Source of the DNA: Zygnema circumcarinatum SAG 698-1b
Lineage: Eukaryota > Plantae > Zygnematophyceae
Direction of reading: 5' to 3'
NCBI GenBank assembly: GCA_037447605.1
Contig: CM074815.1
Coordinates: 2,418,001 to 2,482,000, forward strand
DNA length: 64,000 nt
Shown piece by piece: positions 1 to 41,900 of the stretch. A model generated the notes under the pieces. That model was not told the DNA's origin. It was given only the letters and a program-made list of their open reading frames with translations, and did no database searches. Within the stretch, counting starts at the first letter, position 1, and the number at the start of each line of letters is the position of its first letter. The position numbers were made by a program, and so were the translations under genes.

Positions 1-110
1 AAGAATTGCTTCTAAACGAAGCAATAATAGAACTCGTCATTTACGCCATGCAGCTGACATTTTTTTTTGAATGAAATGGAGATAACGGCAAAAGGAGTTC
101 CTGTGTTCAC

Positions 111-650
111 CTCAAAGCAGAATTTCCGCAAGTAAACGCGGAAACCTGTTGTTTTCCCAGATAGCAGCAAAAAACTGTCGCCTCCAACCTTCACTTGAAC
201 ATTCTCTGCAGACTCCAGCTGAGCCATTCCACACACGAAAAACTATTAAAAACCCATACACATGATCGCAGGTACGGGAATCATAAAAAAAAACAAAATA
301 GCTATTGCGGAACACAAATGACAGCAACAAAGTGAACGAAGAGGTGTAGCATGTTCACGAAACCTCCCGTTTCCTAGTTTCCCAGTCAGTACCTTCTCCT
401 TCACCAGCCTTCCAAGTATGTTTGAGAGTAACCCTCCCACTATGCTGAACCCCGGCCCTTCCCCCGCCCTGTCGGAGAAGATCGGCCATAGACTGTACTC
501 AGACTGCGCTGCGATTCGCCCTTCCTCCACATTGTCGCTCAGCGTGACATCTGTCACAGGTATTAACGGCGGCTGAAACTTACTGCCAGTGAGGGCAATC
601 GCTCGAGAGGGAGACTCGGGCAAAGACGTCTGCTCGGTTGGAAGAGGGGA

Positions 651-681
<31 letters not shown>

Positions 682-691
682 NNNNNNNNNN

Positions 692-730
<39 letters not shown>

Positions 731-3219
731 GTGAGGGGATGGAATGTACATGAAAGCAGGAAGTACATGGAACATTGGAAGGAAACAAAGGGGTCCATAG
801 TTCTGTGACGTTTCACAGAACTCAGCTCTAACATCGATTATGAAATAGCAAAGTCAGCTTTGAGGGAATTCCTGCGTTTATATGGCATTCATACAGACGC
901 ATTCCAAAACCATGTGCCATGTTCTATGCAGTTGAATGAGTTGGCCTTGCTGCCTGCACGCGTTTGGGGGTAGGCAAACAAAGACATCTTCAGTGAGATG
1001 GAAGTCAGCTCGCACCTGTACACTTTCAGCCGCCGGCATTTGTAGCAGGCAGTAAAATGACCCCGCTACAAGGCCGATCAGAAACATTAGGCCAAGAACG
1101 AGCCATCGTAGAAAACTATTTTCCGGGCTGCTTTCGGATTCGTCGAAGGCCAATGTAACTGCAACATTTTCCGGATTGGCAGTTACGACCTGCACAATCT
1201 CTGTATCTGGTAGAAGGACTGTTTCGTTCGACTTGCTGACAACATAGTCGCTGGTTTGGGTAGCTGTTCCCCCCTGCAGATTGTAAACACTCGCAGTAGC
1301 CGGCATCCTTTCATCGGTGAGGGTATCTGCTACAATGCTTCCGGAATCAGAATGACTTGAAGTGACTTCCAGTACATTCAATTCTGCTGTTGCATCGTTT
1401 GAATTCGAAACAAGTACTCGCCGAAGTGCAGGCCGTCGAAGGTCGGAATGAATCCTAGACTTGAAAAGTCGTAGCAATTCGGTCCAGAAGAACTTGCCAT
1501 ATTGTGCATCGACGATGGGAGCCATTATTGAGAAGGAATGCCTGTCAAAAGCACAGCAGAAAGAGGAACGGAAACTTCATAAGTTTCTAAACTTGCTATT
1601 TCCATAATTGACAAAGCACCTTAGCACGTTTAAGCTTTTGCTGCATTCTCCTTTCGCATTCTCCTTTTCACTGTCCATCCATCCGCACAAGGCAAAACTG
1701 AACCCTCCTCACCATCGCGCTTCGCTCAAATCTGCCGAAATCTCGCCACTTGATCCGACGGCCCACAGGAGGTCCACTGGTTGCGTGCGCAAGTAAGCGA
1801 TTTCCTTTGTGCCAATTTTCTGCTCAAACCTGTCGTCGCCAAAGGTCACACGATCATGCTATTTAAGTTAGCATGTGCATATGTTTTTTAGTTAGTTAGT
1901 TAGTTAGTTTCACGTGTGTTAGACATGATCTCGAGGATGCAAGCCATGTGAGGAAGAGCCTTAGTTTATCTTTCGCTTTGTACCATACAGAAAAGAGATG
2001 CACAATTAAGCTAAGAATTTGCGATTGAAAATCTTATGTACCAACTAAGTTCATTCTTGCAAAGAACTAACTTTATGTTCTCCCTCGGCGCAATTCATTT
2101 ATTCTCGCTGCAAGTGTTCTTCACAGTCCTTCACACTATGGTCTTTATAAGCTGTTAAAAGCGTCCCTTTCTGCATCGAACTTTCCATACCCGCCTCCAT
2201 TGAGTACATTATCATTCAGTTATGCTTTTCCCCATTGAAATTAAGCATCCTTGACACTTCCTTCTGTAGTTAGGACAGTGGCGTGTTGGAAGGGAGGGGT
2301 GGGGAATTGAGGGAAAGTGAACGAAAAGAGAGGACTCGCACCTTAACGAGATTTTGCCATTTTTGGCTTCTGCAGAAGCTTCCTTCACAATCAACCTGAA
2401 CAGTTCAAACCTAAAAATTAGAACAAGAAGGTCGTCGGTTATGATGTTGAAGTGAAAGCAATTTCATTTAGGGAAAGGCTTAAAAATTCGCGTAAAGTGC
2501 AATCAGTCACAAGGGGGGACAGCTGCCTGAAGTATCTCCCACCTCTCAGCCGGCCTTGTGCATGCACTGCCGCTGCTCTTCAGAGCGACTGTCACAATTC
2601 TAGTTGTGCCACCTGGCAGCTGCTCAAGGATCAGTCCTGAACTGTCTGCCACGTGTTCCCCCGGGGCGAAGATAAGGCCCATCCATCCGCCTGTGCGGGC
2701 TTCCACTGCGAATCGAATGCTGTCATCGGTGTACTGCCAATGGACCGACAACCTGCAAACTCGACGCGGGCTGCTTGCATCAGAGGGGGGCAAGGGAGTG
2801 GCTTCAGGTGGAAAAAGGAGGGAGAGGAAAGGCCAAATGAATATATATATGGGGCACTGAAAGAGCGGAAGAAAAGAGAGAGAGAGAGAGACAGAAGGAG
2901 AGAGTAAGAGAAAGAGAGAGATACAGCGACCCCTGAGCAGCTTGCCAAAGGCCAGATCTAACGCAATTATTGAGCGTTCAGTGCCACAGGTGCAGTGCAT
3001 GGCCATGACCAGCTCTGCCTCCCTCGCTGCGCGCACTCACCTGAAGCTGCCGGTCGCCTCGTGCACGCACTGGAAGCCCTCCAACCACGAGGGGGCGCAT
3101 GGGCTCTCCTTGGCTAAAGTCAACGTTGAATGCCACATGGCAAGGAAAGCAGCCATCACGATACTGCCAGATGGAAGCCTGTGCTTTCCCCGACGAGACA
3201 TTCCCCTCTCGCGCTTCAT
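111..3219 (-). CDS. Signal peptide-DOMON-TM-DUF2993(LmeA-like) membrane protein; 3' end runs off the window start. Exons 3219-3041, 2752-2543, 2395-2342, 1829-1713, 1541-1016, 629-393, 218-111
   Basis: All junctions are GT-AG and phase-compatible (2,2,2,2,0,0). DOMON-like motifs LSVHWQY...IRFAVEARTGGWMGLIF and QPVDLLWAVG...RWH; hydrophobic segment WLVLGLMFLIGLVAGSFYCLL; C-terminal IVGGLLSNILGRLVKEK|LESAENVQVKVGGDSFLLLSGKTTGF matches the two DUF2993-like paralogs at 33-38 kb, including an identical 108-nt exon. Confidence 0.7.
651..729. repeat. Poly-G run flanking a 10-N assembly gap (N at 682-691); intronic in the model above
   Basis: Homopolymer G with Ns seen directly; it produces the spurious poly-Pro ORFs in the track. 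Confidence 0.9.
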
Positions 3220-3699
3220 CCCTGCCTGAGCCCGAGCACTCACAGTGATACACTGAAGCTCACTGCTCCGCAGATCTGGATTCTTTTTTACGAAACCAAC
3301 TTTTTCTACCTGCCTTTCCTCTTTTCTCCACTCCCTCGCCCTCTCACTCCCGCCCTTTCCTGCAATTCCCTAGCTTGTCTTCCCTACTTCCCTCGCTGTC
3401 TTCTCTGTGTTCCTCTTCCTCACCTTCTTCCGTCTTCTCTTTTACTCGTTCTCGTGCTTTTAATTCCCTGTCTCTACTCTTCTCATTTCAAAATCTTCTC
3501 TTCAGGGCGACCTGAAATTTAAGGAACTTGACGGGAAATCTCAATGCCACTGCAGGCGCTCCCGTGATGGAAAATCCGCGCATGCAGCACCTCCGGTGCA
3601 ATGCAGCCTTCCGCCTTTTCCCTTCACCGAGACAGCCAGCACCTCTCTCCCTCCCTCTCTCCCTCCCTGCTGCTTCAGCATAGCCCCTCCACGAGAGCC

Positions 3700-4200
3700 G
3701 AGCCTTCAGCGCTCGCTCGGCTCCCCTTCCGCCTGCTGTCCACGCGTCGCCTGCTCATTGGGCCCAGCCACATCCGCGGCTTCCTCTTCCCGCCTCCCCA
3801 TGGCGTCCGCCACGTCACGTGCCAGCAGGAATGCGCGCGCGCGATGCCGGCTAATGGGAAGGTACCACGTGGCACGGACATTTTTTATCACGCGCGGCCC
3901 TCGGAGATCAGAACGAGTATGTCGCTAGCGTCGTATCGAGGGCCTCCGGACGGTGGAGATGTTGCCACGTGACCATCGATCCTTGCCGCGGGCCGTGTCC
4001 GTCAACGTGTCGCCCGCTCGGAACGGTGTGGTCGACTGGTCGGTGCGCCCTCCCGCGCGCCACGTGGCGCTGTGCGTGCGAATGGGCGCCCTTATCGGCG
4101 CGTGTGGAGCGTCCGATGGCGGTCAACGCGGCGGAGCGCTGACCAGATCGACGGTGGCCACCTCGCCGCAGGCCGCCCTCCACCCTACCTGTTGCCCGCG
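3700..4200. promoter_or_regulatory. GC-rich promoter island with several CACGTG G-boxes, upstream of the DOMON gene (probably bidirectional)
   Basis: High GC/CpG; repeated (c)cacgtg(g) motifs between about 3810 and 4070; same architecture as other gene starts in the window. Confidence 0.5.
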
Positions 4201-6452
4201 GGCCTCCAAAAGCCCAAGAAGCTTCAGGCTTGTCCGTACTTGAAGCTTTCCTTGGAAAGGGCGCAGCATTCCTCTGTCAGTCAGGGGCACTCGAACCTCA
4301 CTCAGGTCCGCGATGAGGGAGGGGGAGCGCACGCGGACTGTGAGGCTGTGCGAAGAAGCTCGCCCTCTCCTTACACCGAGGGGGGTTGACGGGCTGGTGA
4401 GGCCATACTATTTCAGCATCTTAGTGTGTCTCTCTCTTTCACCCCTTATTCCGGTGGATAGAGTAAGCCGGCTGGGGGCTCCCAACATCAGTGGCGGATC
4501 CAGGATTTTTTCCGAGGGGGGCTAAGCCCACTTTCAGCATAAAATACATAAGACAAAGTAAAAAAAAGTTGAATTTTCAAAATCTGAGGGGGGGGGTAAG
4601 CCCTCCCAACTCGTATACGTAGGTCGTCCACGGCCCATCAGTCATGCTGAGCATTTACTGTCTCAACATCTTCGTGAATTTGTTTAGCTAGCCCTCATCC
4701 TCTATCGCTCTCCTTAACGGAGCAGCAGCTGATAGAGGAAATTTAGCCTTTCTTATGCGAGGTTCTGGTGGTGGCACCATGACGCAGGTACATTAGGTTT
4801 AGATAGTAGAACTCCGCACATACTGGTGCCTACTAATCTTCGTTGTCTCGGAGCTCAGAGACAACTTAGCGTGCGTGGAGGCGTCACGTGTAGTGGCGGA
4901 CCTACATCTACGAGTTGGGGGCTTAGCCGTCCTGAGATATTGAAATTCAACTTTTATTTTACTTTATGTTATGTATTTTATGCTGAAAGAGGGCTCAGCC
5001 TCCCCTGAGCAAAGATCCTGGATCCGCCACTGGTCACGTGGCCAGGGGTAGCCCGTGGCATGGTGTTTCTATCCCGCGCTGCACGGTCCTTCCATATAGA
5101 CGTTGCAGGCCACGGGGTGCAGTCGGGTGTACGGAGCTGCTAGACATCGCAATTGGCTGGAGCAACTTATGGCAGGACTGGAAAGGGTGCGAAGTTGCCC
5201 GATGAGTTCTTAGGGTCTTCTGTTCTGGTCTTGGGGCTGGGCCGTGTATTTTTGTAAGCGTCTTAGTCTTGGAATGGATTAAGATAACAATTTTTACTAG
5301 GGTTAGCAGGCTTTCAGTTTGTAGGCTTTGCTATTCCAACGGTGCATGAACAGCATCGCGTGGCGAGGGCGGTTCCGATGCGCTCTCATGAAGTTTCATT
5401 AGTGGAGGAGGAACCTTCTTTCCCGACACCCTTTGAGGCTTGCATGAGTCGTTACGTGGGGAGCTGGTGTTATGATGCTGCAAGAGAATATGGGCAGGGA
5501 TGTGGAAAAATAAAGTGAATTATTTCGTGCTTGAAGTGAGCATTCCCCCATTTGGCAACATTTGGAGGCACGAAAGTGGGGAGAAATGAATGGGAAATAG
5601 GAGAGCAGCGAGCACAGGTTCGACTTCAAGACTTCGTACAGCAACGGAAGCTGTGTACAGTGGAAAGAATGGAGAACGCTTTTCAAAGATCATGAAAATG
5701 ATAGCTAACGTAGTGATTGCCGCAAAGAGAAAGGAAAGTCGGAAGTCGAGGGAAGTCGGTGATTGGAGCAAAAAGGAGCACGTGGATGACAATGAGTGAC
5801 AGTTCCATAGAGACCTTCATGTGCTGCTTTGCTTTTAATTCTTGTCGTAACATTTGCTGACTGATGTATGAGAGGGTTTTGTGTGAGTGTAACGATGCGC
5901 GACTCGCCAGTTTACAGAGGATCAACAAATAAATTTGTGTTCTTCTGCAGAGGTTCCCTTGTTGCCACTAGGGTGTTCCGCTGCTCTCATAAATGATTAC
6001 TTTCACAATTACTTCACGTGTATCTGCGAAGGGAATGAGTTGGAACTGGTGCTGGATGACGGGATGCAAGTGAATGGCAGGACGTGATATGTAACGTTGG
6101 AAGAGAGCATGCCTCAGATAACTGGTAAAAACGGTTCCGCAAGGTCTGAAGAGCCTCAAATCTCCAAAGCAGTCGATGATATGAAACATTTGCACGATAA
6201 ATAGCAGACAATTTTTTGGTAAGCATAAAGAACTCTCCAGGATCAACCAACGATTGGGCAGTTGAGCTAATCCACAAAACTATCTCAGCACGCTTGGATT
6301 ACCTTACGTTTTCACCACGAACAACGCTTCTTACAGCGACGGCCTCATCCATGTTTCTTTCTTCCGTTGCACACTCTGGTGAAGTCATCACTTCTGGTGA
6401 GCACATCAGTAGAAAAAGTCAGCAGACTATTGCCAATAACCCATGGAAATGA
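4070..6452 (+). CDS. Putative multi-exon gene of unknown function (model unresolved)
   Basis: Exon-like blocks with plausible splice sites, e.g. ~5109-5187 ATGCSRVYGAARHRNWLEQLMAGLER and ~5485-5690 RIWAGMWKNKVNYFVLEVSIPPFGNIWRHESGRNEWEIGEQRAQVRLQDFVQQRK; follows a GC island. No family recognised. Confidence 0.3.
4489..4633 (+). mobile_element. hAT-type MITE copy 1 (~145 bp)
   Basis: Starts CAGTGGCGGATCCAGGAT and ends gtaggtcgtccacgg (degenerate TIR); reverse-complement homolog of 4891-5032; degenerate flanks cccaacat/cccatcag. Confidence 0.75.
4891..5032 (-). mobile_element. hAT-type MITE copy 2 (142 bp) with 8-bp target site duplication
   Basis: Imperfect TIRs TAGTGGCGGACCTA ... TGGATCCGCCACTG; perfect 8-bp TSD GTCACGTG at 4883-4890 and 5033-5040 (8-bp TSDs are characteristic of hAT). 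Confidence 0.85.
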
Positions 6453-6579: not shown

Positions 6580-7660
6580 GCGAGCTGTGACTGTAACCGC
6601 GCAACCACGCCGGCGCCACCACCGACACGTTCGGTGGCGAACGTCGCGCGCGGGGGCGTCTGCGGCCTCCTCGCGGGGCCTCGCTCGCGGCCGGCGCCAT
6701 AACCGCCGCGCGAAGCGAAGCCCTCAGTCTTCTTCCAGTCGCCGCCAGGCGGGCGGCCGCCCCCCCGCCATGAGTGCTCCGCGGGGGAGCGGAGGCCGCG
6801 GGCGGTTAGCGGCGGCCTCGCCCTAATGAGCCGCCGCCGCCGCCCGGGCGGCCGGAGCCAATCGGCGCGCTGGCGGGCCACCCGCCCCACGGGCCGACAG
6901 GACATGACGTGGCGCGTCAAAGCGCGGATTCGGCCGGCGACCAACGGCGGCCTTCAAGCCCCAGATAGTGCCAGCTGGCGCGCGGTCGGCCGCGTGGCGG
7001 GGGGCAGGCCCTCTGGGGCTGGTCCCTGTGGGTCCCGCATTGAGTGGCATGCCATGAAATGCCATGAAATGCCATGAAATGCCATGCCATGCCATGCCAT
7101 GCCATACATGCATGCCCATCCCGTCATAATGGCCCTCTCGGCGCGAGTCGCCCTCCCTCCGTCCTCCCGCGCCGGTTCCATGCGCGGTCGGCGCGCGGCA
7201 GTTACGCGCGCGCCCCGGGCCGCCCGCCCGCCCTCCCGCACGTGCGCCGACTCCCAGGTGCCCGCGCGCGGCCGCCCGCCCGTGGTCGGCGGCGCGCCGG
7301 CGGTTCGCGGCCGTACCGTACGGTGCGGGCCGGGCCCTGCGCGCGCGGGCGGGCGGTAACGGCGCGTTAACGCGCGGTGCTGCGTGACATGACGTGACGT
7401 GACGGGGCGCGGCGTAACGGGCGGAAACGGCCCGGGGTGGGGGCCAGTGGGCGCCACGTGCCGGGCGGGCGGGGGGGTGAGCTGGGGGCAGCTGGCGGCT
7501 ACTACCCCCCTCAGGCCGCCTCCGCACAGCCGCAGGGAGCAGCCCGCGGGCCCGCCCCGCCGCGCAGCAAGCCGCGGCGGAGAAAGAGGCGAGGACCGGC
7601 GCTCACCTCCCGGAGGAACTGGAGGCTGAGGAGGAGGACGAAGGGGACTTCGCGCAGACA
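6580..7660. promoter_or_regulatory. GC-rich island upstream of kinase A, with G-box (7455-7460) and a CCAAT motif
   Basis: Very high GC/CpG; the many overlapping Arg/Pro/Ala/Gly ORFs here are compositional artefacts. Confidence 0.5.
7051..7114. repeat. (GCCATGAAAT)3-(GCCAT)5 microsatellite ending in an RY-type CATGCATG
   Basis: Seen directly. Confidence 0.85.
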
Positions 7661-31933: not shown

Positions 31934-32359
31934 CGTGCTCTCGCAAGAAATTCCGAACGCGCTCCACAGAACTTTTGTGCAGCCCTGTGGTCACAGCGAC
32001 CCTGAGAACGAACAAAAGTGTTATGTTGTGGTGTGGTGCCTCAACCCATGTAAAAGGAAGATGACGGAATGCAGTGCTGAACCAAGTGCTGCATGAGTCG
32101 TTGTGCCCGTGACAATTTGCAGCATTAGGGCTTGTCAAACTTGAAAAACTACCACTCTTTGAAAATCAATTATCCTACTTGGGCGTGTCACCCGTTGGCA
32201 CTGACCTTCGAGATTTATTTCAAACCAGTAATTTCGGATTTTGCCTTCACTACTTATTTCCGGGGAATGCATGTACCAACCTTTGACGAGCGGCTCTTAA
32301 AATAGCCGTTGGGGCCCGGAACTGGATGGCACAACCCGCCGGCCGAGTCTGGATCGGAT

Positions 32360-32410
32360 GGACGGACAACGGACGGACGGACGGACGGACGGACGGACGG
32401 ACGGACGGAC
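32360..32410. repeat. (GGAC)n microsatellite (a second tract at ~38600-38652)
   Basis: Seen directly. Confidence 0.85.
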
Positions 32411-33029: not shown

Positions 33030-34838
33030 ATGGGCCAGGGAGACGGAGTCCTCGTGGCCCCGTACGCGCCGTCCCCCGAATGGACGGACGTCCTCTCGCA
33101 GGGGCTCAGCGCTGCGGCGGTTTCCAACTTCATCGCGCAAGGGCGGGGGACGCGGGACGAAGGGCGCACTTCATCTTTCTCCGCGGTGAAGAATCACGAC
33201 TTGGACATCCTTCCGTCAGACTCAGAGTCTGTCTCTGACCGCAGATCGGGGAAATTCGTGACTCTTGACGAAGACGATGGGTGGAACTATCTGCATCGGC
33301 TGGACTCGGACGACCTGCCGAAGCTGAGCATTGTCGGGAGCGCCATGGCGACAGTGCTCAAGTTCTTCGTGCGGCAGAAGGTAACGTCGCCGTCTCCTGC
33401 TGCACTGTTTGTTCACTTTCTTAGCGCGATGCTTGAAGTAGAAGTCTTCATTTGAGCTGACTCGAGGACTTTAGAGAAACTTTCGCCTTTCATCTATCAC
33501 TATGAAAAAAAGCGGCAGTGGTGACAGATCGCCTCAACTGACATCAGCAGAATCAATTTTTAATTTTTAATTCACGTTTTATAATTGTATATGAAAAGTT
33601 CATCTGGTACGGTCTGTGTGTCTGATTACGTACGTGTGCAATGTGCAGATGGAATATGTGGGGCAGTGCAACGTGGCGATTGGGGGAGAGAGCTGGCAGC
33701 TGCTGCGAGGCGAAGTAAAAAGCTTTCAAATTTACATGCAAGACTTTTGCTTCAGAGTAAGGCACACTACGGAATTGTTTTTTCGTTCTTTTCCCTAACT
33801 GCACACTCATATCCATGAACATGGCTAAAGAAAAAAACTCATAGATTAGCTGTCGCTTTTAAATGCGACATGGATTGATATTCTTTCACAGCCTCAACTT
33901 TCCTTCATGGCCCCTTGCAGGGTATGCGCACCACAGAAGCCGAATTGCACACATTGGACGACGGCGGCGGCATGAAGTTCAACCTCAGAAGTGCAGGCAC
34001 GGGGTAAGAGCCGGCACTTACCCGAAATGTCAGAGGACAAACTTTCTCTTCTCTGCTTCAATCTTTTCCTTTTGAAGAGGGCGACAGGTGACCAGTTTTT
34101 TATCAGATATTAATAGCTGCTTTTCCCTTCCGAATGCACAGGGGGAAGCTCTTGGAGCGAAAGGTGCCGATGCTGCTCTCTGTTCGGGAAAGCGAAGCGG
34201 ATGCCCTTCCAAGGTACGCATTCGCATACAGATATTTAAACATGTCGATGGGAGCTTAAGGACAAAGCTAACGATATGTTGACCTTTGGCAAATGGAGTT
34301 CATGATGTACCCATTTTAACAGCATCCTTTTTCATTGTTGTCTCCTTGTCGCAGCCTCCATAGGAACAACCTTCTGCATAAAACGGTTCAGGAGTGTTGG
34401 AATTATATCCATGGCGTCTCTGTGGCGGAGTACATCACAGATGACGCCCCTGATGCAGTCCCCAACTTCCCCCTTCCACTGCCCGAGCTGTCCCTTAAGC
34501 TTGCTGATGGTTTAGCTCTCTTTGAGGAGGTCCAGGAGGATCGAGTCGTTGCTTCGAATGGTGAGGCAAAAAATCCAATTAGGTTTGCGTTAAATTTTAG
34601 TGTTGAAAGGGTTGGGGAACTAGAGGAACTGGTAGTGTCGGAAGTTGATTGGCCAATTAGAGTTTTCCAGCCGGAAAAAGGCTGTGCAGAAACGGAGTTG
34701 GAGGGCGTGAGGGTGACGCTGGCAGAGCGTGCAAAGTGGCGGAAGGTGGTAAAAATGTCAAATGATATTAGGTTTCAGAGTTTTTCGGTCCGAAAAGGTT
34801 GGTTTTGCTATTCGTACAAGTTTTCATTGGACTTGTAA
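33030..34838 (+). CDS. DUF2993/LmeA-like protein, paralog 2. Exons 33030-33380, 33649-33756, 33921-34003, 34142-34213, 34355-34838
   Basis: Phase-consistent model: IVGSAMATVLKFFVRQK|MEYVGQCNVAIGGESWQLLRGE...KLLERKVPMLLSVRESEAD...DIRFQSFSVRKGWFCYSYKFSLDL. Resembles the cyanobacterial DUF2993 pattern as recalled (LRLWLRSQ-EQL-V-I-GGDRQILSG...LLEP-PV...EADLN). Confidence 0.75.
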
Positions 34839-35700: not shown

Positions 35701-37988
35701 CTAGAGATCAAGATCGAAGGCGTAAGAGCAGCTGAGCCAACCCTTCTCCACAGTGAAGTTTTTGAAGCGGATGTCCGGCGGCAGGTCCATGATCTTAAAC
35801 CACTTCTCGCGGTGTTCACCGACTTGATGCTTTGGAGTGGTGGAGTCCGCGTGGGGCCACCGCGCCTCCATCACCTTCAGCCTTTCGTATCCATCGATGA
35901 TTTCAATCTTGAATTGCAGGGCCATCCTTGCCGGCTCCTTGTGTCCCTCGCTTTGCTTCAACTCGTTGTCAATAATCTCCTCATACAAGGCAAGTCCGTC
36001 GACGAATGTCACTCGAAAAAGCGGAAGCGGCAATAGAGGAGGTTGCGTGGAATCGGGCTGACAGGCTTCGCCGAGTTTTACGTTCCGGCCATTCATGTGA
36101 TTCCAGCATTCGTGCAGCGTTTCTCTCAGTAACTTGTTGCAATTCTCGGCGATGCTGCAAGCACCCGGAGACAGACTAAGTAGTGTGGAGATCACGACCG
36201 AGGTATTAGTCACTCGCGCAAGGTCGCCAAGGCACTTTGACAGGTAAAAACCCTAAAAACCAAGCACGTCTGCATGACGCAAGTGGACGCATCAAGTAAA
36301 CCTGGAAGGTCACCTTGAGGTCGCGCCTGACTCCCTAACGCGAATTGACATCTTCATTGGCACCCGCTTTGTCAAGAGCTTTCCCCTGGCATCCCAGAAA
36401 AACAAAAACTTGATTTGTTGGGAAAGAGAAATGCCCAGCCATGCCCTTGCTCCTGAAGGAGCGCAATTCAGCCGGGTCGCCAGAAAGCTCACGCACTCAC
36501 CCATTGCGAGCGCTGCTGAGATTAAAGTCAATGCGGCCTGCCTCGGGCAGTGTCTGAGCCTCCGCTTCTGCCACCAAGCAGTTCTGCAGAATTTTTCATT
36601 GGAGGACGAGAGAGTGAGAGACTTGAAAAAGAACACGTAGCTGGATTTAAACCAGAACACGCTCCTGTCTCCCTCCCCCTTCCCCCACCCCCTCTCTCCC
36701 CTTGGTCCACTCGGTCGTCTCTCTATTTCCTCACTAAGCAGTGTGGTTAATTTTCACATTCGTGAATTAGTTTGCAAAATACTACAAAAATTGTTTGCAG
36801 AACCTCACAAATCAGCAGGTTGAACTCTTCTTTGTAATTGCAGCGAAAGGCACCTCATAGGAAAATCTTTGCATGTATATGCGGAAGCCTGTCGTTCGTC
36901 CTGATAGCAACTGCAGACTGCTTCCACCAATAGCCACGTGGAGCTTGCCACAGAAGTCCATCTGTCACGCCATGAGCCAGTAATAGGTTAAAATGCGCAG
37001 CACGCATCCCAGTCTCTCGTCAGCATTGCCTCATCTTAGAATTCTAATACCTATTTTTCAAGAGAATACAACAAAAGCAACAATCCAGGAACACGGTACC
37101 ATTTGCTCCATAAATCACGCTTCTACGAGGGCGGCGTTATACCTTTCGCCGAACAAACATCTTGAGCAGATTCGAAACCACTCCTCCAACAATTCCACTT
37201 CGCGGTGCCCCCTCTGATGGTTTCTCAAAGAGGTATTCTGTTCCAGGTGACGAAATTTCGTCCATCAACCCACTGCCTTTGCCGTAATAAATCGGCGAAT
37301 TCAGGTAAAATGGACTCATGACAGCCATGGACGAGCCCGGCGAAGGCACCCATGAAGGAGTGCTCAGCTTCGCGCTTCGTGGAGCAACGTCTCTGAATGC
37401 GGCAGGTGGACTCGAGCACTCGCTTGGGCACCCACTAGACCCATGAGCCTCGGTCCATTCTGCAGGCTGGTCGACACGTGGCAAGCTTGGAGACGGTGAG
37501 TTGGCAGGTGTTCTGCTCTTCTGCTTGACCCGTGCTTCTACCAAAGGGCTTTGCATTGCAATTCCTGCAAGCCGAATCGCCTCGACTTGTGTTGGAGTAT
37601 TCAATGGTTGGGGAGACGGCAGCTGCACATGGTTGGGAAGTGGAGATCTGCCATTCAAGAGGCCCGACTTTGAGCTCTTCCCAGGTCGCTTTCCCGCAGA
37701 ATTGACGCCCTGAACATGATGCAGAACCGAGCCGCGTGGTGAAAACTGTGGGCGCGGCGAATTCTGTCGACCGTTGATGATGAGATGCGAGAGCGGACGA
37801 GGCCTGCGGATGGACGTTGTTGGAGCCGTCATTGTGAGAGAAAGACAAGAGTTGCATAAAAGGAGTCTGACGCCCTGCGAGGGGGTCGTCTGCCTCGCCT
37901 GACAGTCACACTTCACGAGCCCGACTCTACTTCTTAACGGATGTGAAGGAGCGACCACGACTATCCGTCCAGAGGGGCTCTCCTGCAT
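35701..37988 (-). CDS. DUF2993/LmeA-like protein, paralog 3, with a long Ser/Pro/Arg-rich N-terminus. Exons ~37988(or 37832)-37143, 36961-36854, 36583-36501, 36385-36314, 36154-35701
   Basis: Internal exon sizes 108/83/72 nt identical to paralog 2; IVGGVVSNLLKMFVRRK|MDFCGKLHVAIGGSSLQLLSG...DIRFKNFTVEKGWLSCSYAFDLDL. Confidence 0.78.
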
Positions 37989-38989
37989 GACTTATAGTTT
38001 TCGGCTGCATTTGCCTCCCTTTCTCTGCTGAATCAGAGCCGAAGCTCGATGGCATTCCTGCCAAGCCGGCATTCCTGCGAGCCGAGCCGCCCCCCGTCCC
38101 CTCCCTCCGCCTGCAAGCCCCGCCGCTTCCTTCATAGCGCGCGGGGGGCGGGCGGGCCCTCCGAGGCGAGGCCCCGCGTGACGCGACGCGACGCGGGGGA
38201 CGGCCGGTCCCGCTCACGTCCCGCGCGTCACCCGCCGTCACGCGCGCTGACGGAAACGGTCACCGCCTGTCCGGTCAGGACGGCCGAACCCTCCCTTTGT
38301 GCGGCGCGACGCGCCCATTCGCCGGGCGGGGTCCCGCTGAAACTGTAAGCCCACGTTGTGCCACGCGGGCAGGCCGTTGGGCCACGTTGGCAGGCCGTTG
38401 GCGCCACGTTGGCCGGCCGTTGGCGCCACGTGTGCTTTCACTGCGGTATCTGGGCAACTGGCGACGACTATAACACTGACGTGGCACTATGCCAAGCTGG
38501 CAACCCCGGCATGTACAGCTGATTGCCGAGCCTACGTGGCGGCAGGCTCGGTACGCGCCCCCCCCCCCCAGCTGCATGCGCTACCTGGATGAAATGGACG
38601 AACGGACGGATGGACGGACGGACGGACGGATGGACGGACGGACGGACGGACGGCACATAACATCGCCGGCTGGACGACAAAACCGACAACGCTGACAAAT
38701 CGATCGAACCTTTGTCCTCGCCGATGCATCAACTTGCTTCAACTTGCTTCAACCACACTCTTTATCAACGCAAACGGAAGGACATGGCGGCGGGGGGAGG
38801 TGCTACAGGCAGTGTGTGATAGCTCTGGATAGCAAAGTGAATGTCTTTCTATGAGAAACTCTGTCCTGTAACCACCAACTGATGGCTCTTCAAACTTCCT
38901 ACTAGAAACACCACAAGCCAGGCTCTAGTCTCCTATTGAAATACTCTTCAAGCTGAAGGAACCACGGGGTGAAGAGCAGGGCGATCGAA

Positions 38990-41900
38990 CTAAAGCTGCC
39001 TCCTCATCCCTGTCATCCAATACAAACGCACGTCTTCCCTCCTTTCTCTGCGCCAGGAGGGAAAGCACGAGGGCGGAAAGAGAGGTCGGGTGACATCCAC
39101 AATGCTCAAACCGGCCGCTCTTGCCTGTGCTTCAAACAGAGCTAGAGTTGACTCGTTTCTGACAGCTGTAGCAACCAATGCCACGGGACCTTCTGTAACT
39201 GAACTACCGGATCGCTCACAAGCTAAAAATGTCGGCAGATCCTTAACAAAACTTTGACTGTCGCCTTCATTTGCTGCTTCATGCGGCAGCTGCTCAGGTC
39301 GCGTCATTTCACTTCCGCCATAGCTGGTTGGTTCAGCACAGCTCTGACCTAAACACGGCTCATCAGCCAAGAAGACAGGGCCAGGTGGCACTCCATCATT
39401 GGCTGGCAGATCATCCGGGCGCTGAAGCAGTGCACTCAACACTCTCACGAGACTCGGTATGACAGACGGGTCGTAAACAACATCTGCTCCCAGAATCAGA
39501 TCTGCTTGTAGGGAGTGCAAAAAGGCATCCGAAGCCGTTTCCCAATCAAGATTCAAGCAAGCCACCTGTCACATTTTCAACGATACAATTAATTGTGTGG
39601 ACACGGACTTCTGCAAAGCCATCATAATACAAATACTCGGTACGTGTCGCCTACATAGCAAGGAGTAAGGTGCGACCAGGACAGCAACAACTGCAGACTG
39701 GAGGGCTCTACGGAGGTAGCTTTCTGCGGCAGCGACTGTTGCGAAAACTACATGGAAAGAAAGTCCAAAAAGCGAGCAACAAAGGAATGCAGAAATGCCA
39801 AGAAACCATATGCATCTGCACTGCGATGGAATCTCTCTCCTCATTCAGAGCGTTCAATCTCCATCAACTCGGCTACCAGTTTCCAGGAAACAAGACCCTA
39901 CCCGATGCTGAGCAGCCACTATTTCCAAGCGGTTGCTTGCAGCCTCTGCTCCCGCGGTGCGGTCAAGCGAGTGTCCGCCATTGGCTGCACTTGAAGTGAC
40001 AACGCCATTAATCTCCAGATTGTGAATAAGATTTTCCATCGTCTCCGGGTTGCCATCAGTCAAAATCACCTGCTACCAACAGTGTATGTGTCAGGGCGTG
40101 TAGTTCGATGCTAGACAATAGAAACCACAGAGCCAAGTTTCGTCTCTGAGATGTCTAATTTTGATTGAACCGATTGATGTTCTTAAGACAAGCAAGCACA
40201 ACAACACCTAATACCATCAGCCTGTGAAGAGTATCAGAAAAAAGAAACAAAATCTTTCTGTTGTGAAAAGTTACCTTACCAGCTGGAAGACGGCTCAGAC
40301 AAACTCCAGTGAGCCCGGATCCACTTCCAAGTTCCAAACACGACTTCCGATCAACAAGACGAGGCCAGTTCAACAAAACGGACACAAGATGAAAGCTGGC
40401 CGGCCATACGTAGCAGCTGCATGGAGCCACCGAAAGCCCAAAAAGTCTTCAATCTCAGAGTAATCCGATATCCAGCAAAGCCTCTGAAACTCTGAGATTC
40501 TCATTCAGCTTGTCCCTCAAACTAGACATGCATACATTTTTGCAACCCACAATAAAGACTGAACCAAAAACGAGCTTACCCGGTCCCACCCTGCAGCATG
40601 TTTAACGACAGCCGTAAAGTGACGAGCTCGCTCGCACTGGCTGCCACTTCCACCCCACATTCGTGCCCTCCTTCTCGCCCACCTTTTCTTACAAACCCGC
40701 AAAAGTCACAACTAGTCACAATGAGTTTCTCTGCAACTAGATTTCCCTTTGACGGCTGAGCTTCAACCTCTCGGCCGCCGAGAGCTGGACCTTTCACAGC
40801 AGCGCAAGAAGCATTGCGAGAGGGCACAGCCTCGCTCTTGGTTGAAATGGGAGAGACTTGTGAGTCTGAGTGAAAGCTTGGAAGAAAAGCTGACGGAGGT
40901 GGGTTGCAATACACATAGGTGCGGTAGCACCATAGCGGAGCATCTGACAGCTGTCCGAGTTGGCTCTGTTGGTCCCACAAGGTCCTGCAACCATGTCAGG
41001 AACAACACTACAGTTTCTCATTTCGCACATAGCACGTTCCTATTGTTTGCAGGTAGTAGACATAATTAAGCATGAGCATTTACTGCAAATTTGTACAGAT
41101 AAGAGAAATGAAGTGTATGAAATGATTTGACTAAGCAAGTTTTCTTTTACTTATCGTCAATTCTATGAAAAGAGGTAGCTTAGGCGTACAGTCGGTTGCA
41201 TTAGCAATGCAGGATAAGACTTACCATGGCTACGCAGAGTTCCTGGTAAAGCTCCTCTATGACTTCTGCATCTTCCCCTTCCTCGCAATGTCCAGCTCCC
41301 TCTGCGCCTTCCCTTCCAACGCCGACTTCATTGTGCATCCTCTTCACGTCCTCTTCAGCTGCAGCAATTACTGCTTTGAGTACGCGCACAATGTAGGCTG
41401 GGTCCGGGGGATAGTTCTTTGAGATCTGACAGCGGAACCAACATATAGTTCGCAAAAAAACAATCGCTTTATGAAAGAAAACACATGCCCGAGTGACTGA
41501 CAAAAATATAAGTAAAGGTAACTAGTTCCGAAATCAATGAATGACGACCGAAGGCCAACATAAATTGCAGGGCTCTCTCATGGAATGCTGTTTGACTGCA
41601 ACTCCAAGAGTTTTGAGGGGCGAGAGCAACGACGAGCATTTGTCAAAACGCTCCTTCAACGCATGTATTCCAATCAGATATCAATAACAGAAAAATTCTA
41701 AACGAAAATACTTGACATAGTCTCTTCAAATTGAGGTACCGGGTGATGCAGAACTTCAGAGCAAAAGGAGCGCTGCCTGCCAGGTGTCAGCAGGCCGTTG
41801 CCTACCGAATCCCTGCAATCATACAACAGCCGTTGCTGAAAAACACTTCTCCAAGCGAGAGACATGATTAGAGTTTGAGCAATGAAGTCGGCTTTTCAAA

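Follow-up and report, generated by a model that had tools for sequence, protein, structure and literature searches.

A transcribed gene of Zygnema circumcarinatum joins a probable DOMON ectodomain and a predicted transmembrane helix to a conserved, uncharacterised tail module

The 11 DOMON proteins of Arabidopsis comprise ten CYBDOMs, built on a cytochrome b561 core, and AIR12, a DOMON-only haem b protein of plants that is held by a glycosylphosphatidylinositol (GPI) anchor (PMC10784544). The bacterial family DUF2993, to which mycobacterial LmeA (Rv0817c) belongs, is made up of a transmembrane (TM) anchor, a chorein-N-like part and a TULIP part, and occurs in actinobacteria and cyanobacteria (PMC6791001). 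Here we describe a gene that touches on both groups. It lies on the minus strand, at 3219..111, of a 64,000-nucleotide (nt) stretch of the Zygnema circumcarinatum genome, referred to below as the window, and we call it gene A. A first-pass annotation, made from the sequence alone, had read it as a signal peptide, a DOMON-like ectodomain and one TM helix fused to a DUF2993/LmeA-like domain. We find that the unusual fusion of a DOMON-TM half to a tail module is real and transcribed, while the tail itself calls for a different description.

The transcript of gene A was followed in Logan contigs from four public runs of the same organism, placed on window positions 1-3600. Three of these runs, from two studies (P1 and P2), gave spliced contigs, and we refer to them as X1, X2 and X3. 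The runs had only been guessed to be RNA; since all six genomic introns are missing from their contigs, the contigs are spliced transcripts. In each run one long contig leaves out six stretches, bounded by CT..AC when read on the plus strand and so by GT..AG on the minus strand, and all six joints (3041/2752, 2543/2395, 2342/1829, 1713/1541, 1016/629 and 393/218) are seen in X1, X2 and X3, at a depth of 15-24. Joined locally, the seven exons are separated by GT..AG introns and read in frame, with no stop, through 477 residues within the window. The in-frame joining of seven exons through canonical sites, as first annotated, is borne out at every joint by the RNA contigs. At two introns there was a choice of acceptor: the transcripts take 2395 and not the nearer AG at 2410 (a shift of -15 nt), and 218 and not 242 (-24 nt), both shifts keeping the frame. 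The parts of the gene are as follows.

3220..3627, minus strand: 5' untranslated region (UTR), about 408 nt; the X2 and X3 contigs extend without a break from 3039 to about 27 nt beyond 3600, which puts the mRNA 5' end near 3627.
3041..3219, minus strand: exon 1; start codon at 3219, signal-peptide-like N-terminus (about residues 1-36), joint 3041/2752.
2543..2752, minus strand: exon 2; probable DOMON core including the GEHVAD stretch (H93), with a match to Pfam PF03351 and RNA joints.
2342..2395, minus strand: exon 3 (54 nt); true acceptor 2395, joint 2393->2541 (cut +2) in three runs.
1713..1829, minus strand: exon 4; probable C-terminal DOMON strands, ending ..EARW; RNA joints, no Pfam match when scored alone.
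1016..1541, minus strand: exon 5; predicted end of the DOMON, Ser/Thr-rich stalk and single TM helix; H188 is its first residue.
630..1015, minus strand: intron 5; contains an N gap (682-691) and a poly-C run; spliced out in X1, X2 and X3.
393..629, minus strand: exon 6; putative cytosolic linker and start of the tail module (..SIVGGLLSNILGRLVKEK), from alignment with the paralogues and the metagenomic relative L001 described below.
111..218, minus strand: exon 7 (36 residues, 108 nt); second exon of the tail module, joint 218/393.

The two halves of gene A meet across intron 5, which also contains the assembly gap. The N gap (682-691) sits within a poly-C homopolymer of about 78 nt (652-729), wholly inside the intron (1015..630); because the RNA lacks this intron, the gap leaves the coding frame untouched. 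A gap and a homopolymer between the halves could nevertheless mean that two separate genes, one encoding the DOMON-TM part and the other the tail module, were misjoined by a chimeric assembly across the gap or by read-through. The halves are in fact separable in evolution, the paralogues B and C described below carrying the module alone, and contigs of low depth (about 5) lie inside intron 5, at 743-983. However, the 1016/629 joint, which skips 386 nt with CT..AC ends, is canonical, has 237 nt on its shorter side and is found at full transcript depth in three runs from two studies. Nor are the intronic pieces special: comparable pieces of low depth lie in introns 3, 6 and 7, which makes pre-mRNA or retained introns a likelier source of those in intron 5 than an internal promoter. 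The lack of a GC-rich promoter island between the halves, remarked on in the first-pass annotation, is also confirmed, the GC content at 401-1000 being 0.55-0.61, strongly skewed by the homopolymer, versus 0.65-0.81 in the true islands at 3601-4400 and 6601-7600. Instead of one transcript ending near 878 and another restarting near 800, a single mRNA spans both halves. With spliced contigs crossing 1016/629 in three runs, we reject the two-gene or chimeric origin of gene A, to which we give next to no probability, and treat gene A as one gene with one mRNA.

Two further features of the transcript were observed. The 5' UTR contains two upstream open reading frames (ORFs), one of 31 codons from 3583 and one of 8 codons from 3486; the latter has the frame of the main ORF, but a stop codon ends it. 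In X2, a contig over 191-422 retains intron 6, at a depth of 10.8 versus 22-33 for the spliced form. This isoform would stop at 246, shortly past the start of the tail module.

In the N-terminal half, all three elements of the original annotation have support. The N-terminus looks like a signal peptide, with a net charge of +6 in residues 1-16, a hydrophobic core (IVMAAFLA) and a small-residue cleavage region of the TLA/KE kind, and these sequence features would place the domain that follows in the extracytosolic context of a DOMON. Pfam profiles were scored exon by exon; the DOMON would be split over four exons, those other than exon 2 being too short to score. Exon 2 alone matches PF03351 at an E value of 5e-4 (20.7 bits, profile positions 5-63 of 124), which makes DOMON the probable label for the ectodomain. 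A single hydrophobic segment, residues 333-355 (1105..1037, minus strand; hydropathy peak 2.33), corresponds to the one TM helix.

This half of the protein resembles the plant CYBDOMs, such as HYP1 and CRR (PMC10784544, PMC10784552), in the order of a signal peptide, an outward-facing DOMON of PF03351 type and a membrane anchor, and a His of gene A falls near the position of their C-terminal haem ligand. It differs from them in having no b561 core and one TM helix only, in a His that takes the place of Met at the presumed first ligand position (as judged by residue number) and in its large conserved, probably cytosolic module. No exon of gene A matches cytochrome b561 in Pfam, and we reject membership of the CYBDOMs because the protein has no b561 domain. 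With AIR12 (PMC10784544) gene A would share a single extracellular DOMON that is tethered to the membrane in the absence of b561, whereas AIR12 is attached by its GPI anchor and lacks a cytosolic part. Since the Arabidopsis set consists of CYBDOMs and AIR12, the architecture of gene A is not an Arabidopsis one. The Pfam family of AIR12 is DUF568, not PF03351.

Two histidines of the ectodomain bear on its possible ligand. Arabidopsis HYP1 is predicted to ligate haem through M90 and H174 (PMC10784544); H93 (in GEHVAD) and H188 (in ARWH) of gene A have similar positions, by residue number only and not by alignment. Together with the PF03351 type of the DOMON, which is that of the plant CYBDOMs, this would fit a domain that binds haem b through two His ligands and acts as a cell-surface redox component, exchanging electrons with a separate partner. 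On the other hand, searches with the exons (word, PDB and Atlas) yielded no haem-binding DOMON to align, a single TM helix with no b561 domain cannot carry electrons across the membrane, and sugars are bound by DOMON domains as well (PMC10784544). We therefore consider a redox role with bis-His haem improbable, and return below to the DOMON as a sensor.

The tail of gene A proved to have relatives close by. A local exon-by-exon tblastn against the window placed two relatives of exon 7 (E 3e-8 and 5e-7) in a convergent gene pair, B and C, about 30 kb from gene A.

33030..34838, plus strand: paralogue C; exons 33030-33380, 33649-33756, 33921-34003, 34142-34213 and 34355-34838; 365 residues, starting MGQGDG.
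37988..35701, minus strand: paralogue B; exons 37988-37143, 36961-36854, 36583-36501, 36385-36314 and 36154-35701; up to 520 residues.

Both paralogues contain the whole tail module, as their C-terminal part, and, unlike gene A, have no signal peptide, DOMON or TM helix (maximum hydropathy 1.23); the N-terminus of B is disordered and Ser/Pro-rich. B and C align in five collinear blocks and have identical exon sizes and phases (108, 83 and 72 nt) before a last exon of 454-484 nt, and their last exons are 37.5% identical over 160 residues (E 1e-25). Exon 7 of gene A has the 108 nt of their second exon, and its identity is 44% with gene B and 36% with gene C. A loose end of 30 nt past exon 7 (position 110) reads G-ATTTEAEAH, in agreement with how the third exon begins in C, B and L001. 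From the 108-nt exon and the matching loose end we infer that this module, about 260 residues long, is present in gene A as well, with only about 55 of the residues inside the window. A donor (111, followed by GT) terminates exon 7, and the contigs run on past position 110 by 182 nt (X1) to 1031 nt (X3, whose contig is 2871 nt in full), so gene A is cut by the window edge and incomplete here. Three or four more exons probably lie beyond window position 1, and by comparison with the paralogues the full protein should be near 680 residues.

A further relative comes from outside the window. A profile built on the last exons of B and C found one protein, P0003 (E 5e-30), in a word search of 5.8 billion sequences. 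It is encoded on L001, an algal-looking metagenome contig of 1262 nt from ENA, which is cut off upstream of the module. The whole module is present on L001 and is split into exons in the same way, but for a fusion of the fourth and fifth module exons (649-1245); the 36-residue exon of L001 is 61% identical to exon 7 of gene A. Judged by these likenesses L001/P0003 is a fourth family member, and an intron has been lost or gained within the family. Across the members the last exons are about 37-44% identical and the 36-residue exon 36-61%. The tail is thus, on the alignments, a conserved module of about 260 residues common to gene A, to the DOMON-less paralogues B and C and to L001, and it defines a new, small gene family, with three local members that differ in their N-terminal parts.

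Other searches gave no further member. The word search, which sees only proteins 0.55 to 1.75 times the length of the query, found no relatives of similar length with exon 5 or with exon 2 (through its stop-free ORF). The one search that was free of a length limit, HMMER with exon 6 against 1.84 billion representatives, returned only two spurious repeat proteins; exon 6 holds about 20 residues of the module. With the word search confined to proteins of similar length and so little of the module in exon 6, module-bearing proteins of more than about 260-330 residues were out of reach, and longer plant or algal relatives could exist. No relatives were found in the ESM Atlas with exons 5 and 7, and there was no match in tblastn of exon 7 against plasmids, in PDB sequence searches with exons 2, 6 and 7 and two family profiles, in an NCBIfam scan of all pieces or in an exact look-up of the exon 5 ORF. 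Metagenome, genome and viral contigs were also scanned for patterns taken from exon 5 and the family alignments, and no relative was found. Foldseek against the PDB, an Atlas search and a wide VIA-align run with the better of two AlphaFold2 models returned noise only.

Some observations concern the surroundings of B and C. One tetranucleotide repeat (CGGA/GGAC) is present, in about 14 copies at each place, at 32355-32410 and 38596-38653, in the GC-rich (0.68-0.70) promoter-side flanks of C and B, respectively; both occurrences are on one strand, even though C and B are convergent. The start of gene C, MGQGDG (33030-33050), fits a loose N-myristoylation pattern, with Gly2 followed at position 6 by a small residue; such a modification may give this DOMON-less protein a lipid tether. 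An ORF of 191 residues adjoining gene B (38990-39565, minus strand) has a GADVVYD-type stretch, which we take to be typical of class I methyltransferases.

The DUF2993/LmeA label of the first-pass annotation is not supported as it stands. One Pfam match at E 0.13 (12.7 bits) falls on a 44-residue, mis-spliced piece (242..111), and the true 36-residue exon 7 has none. Against a gathering score of 27.3 bits for PF11209, the best scores obtained exon by exon are those 12.7 bits and the 12.8 bits of the 36-residue exon of gene B, both at E 0.13 over about 31 residues and both below gathering. With exons scored singly, L001 gave no LmeA match in Pfam either, and with a limit of E 10 neither Pfam nor NCBIfam showed one for the last exons of B (150 residues), C (160 residues) and L001 (198 residues). 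We regard kinship of the tail module with LmeA/DUF2993 as not established, a lead and not a finding.

As a lead it deserves to be spelled out. The tail module would be a divergent homologue of bacterial LmeA/DUF2993, with a chorein-N-like and a TULIP part, that has moved to the cytosol, and the DOMON would be coupled to a lipid-binding or lipid-transfer domain. The faint matches are consistent in register, covering profile positions 20-52 in gene A and 27-59 in gene B, and they share a short N-terminal motif, V-x-V-x-G-G followed by L-L-x-G; in that register conservation among the paralogues begins about 20 residues earlier, roughly at profile position 1. The module is similar in size to DUF2993, gene A would share the membrane anchoring of DUF2993 proteins through its predicted TM helix, and the predicted order of secondary structure (about 110 mixed residues, a long helix and seven strands) is like that of Levine's DUF2993, which Pfam also lists in some mosses and picoalgae (PMC6791001). 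However, E 0.13 is not significant, and the two matches come from homologous sequences and so are not independent. The profile finds nothing in the C-terminal 150-200 residues, where the last exons of B, C and L001 would be expected to hold the TULIP half, and no relative turned up when 185,579 bacterial and archaeal genomes were scanned by pattern. The module differs from LmeA also in being eukaryotic, intron-rich and probably cytosolic, bacterial DUF2993 facing the periplasm, and its anchor lies about 70 residues upstream of the module in gene A and is absent from genes B and C. Taken together, homology to LmeA is possible, and we put it forward tentatively. Doubtful, in our estimation, is the narrower proposal that a DUF2993-type domain derived from a cyanobacterium was moved to the cytosol, duplicated locally and fused once to a signal peptide-DOMON-TM unit in streptophyte algae. 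If true, it would give a receptor-like link from an extracellular haem or glycan signal to the handling of lipids at the inner face, an architecture not described in plants. In the literature no paper was found on LmeA together with DOMON, and the earlier statement that no such fusion is known is not contradicted.

We propose that the product of gene A is a type I membrane protein that crosses the membrane once, with a DOMON sensor outside and a cytosolic module at the membrane face. A cleavable signal peptide would direct the DOMON beta-sandwich to the apoplast or lumen, and the DOMON would be followed by the Ser/Thr-rich stalk, the one TM helix and the cytosolic module of about 260 residues. 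As there is no cytochrome b561 core, the DOMON would serve as a ligand-binding sensor, for haem b or a glycan, rather than as part of a transmembrane electron wire. The tail module would work at the cytosolic face of the membrane, where it would be held by the TM helix in gene A and perhaps by N-myristoylation in gene C. That B and C have neither signal peptide nor TM helix points to a cytosolic module, and hence to an N-out, C-in topology for gene A. We are confident of the architecture of gene A and think the proposal as a whole rather probable, while a membrane or lipid role of the tail module is a tentative suggestion.

Several points weigh against this proposal. The DOMON score of 20.7 bits is below the Pfam gathering score of 32.7, one exon being half the domain, and exons 3-5, each scored alone against Pfam, gave no DOMON match. 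The flanks of the TM helix show no positive-inside signal, with one Arg on the N-terminal side and none within 15 residues on the C-terminal side, so that the topology rests on the signal peptide and the paralogues. The tail module has no family in Pfam or NCBIfam and no sequence match in the PDB, and both AlphaFold2 models, from two- and three-sequence alignments, are poor, with predicted local distance difference test scores of 57 and 52 (the former being the model used in the structure searches). Genes B and C are models from homology and splice sites, without read support, and the C-terminal 200 or so residues of gene A are outside the sequence seen.

The present value of the gene A family is that of a well-defined target rather than a solved mechanism. 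To the two designs of the Arabidopsis census, the CYBDOMs and AIR12 (PMC10784544), gene A adds a third, a DOMON protein with one membrane pass and a large conserved module that is probably cytosolic, and it is transcribed in a close algal relative of land plants. Its module defines a small gene family not described in the libraries that were queried. Should the module prove to be LmeA/TULIP-like, it would represent a eukaryotic, cytosolic use of a lipid-binding domain of the bacterial envelope; if not, it would be an orphan domain that comes with an experimental handle, three paralogues with different membrane tethers.

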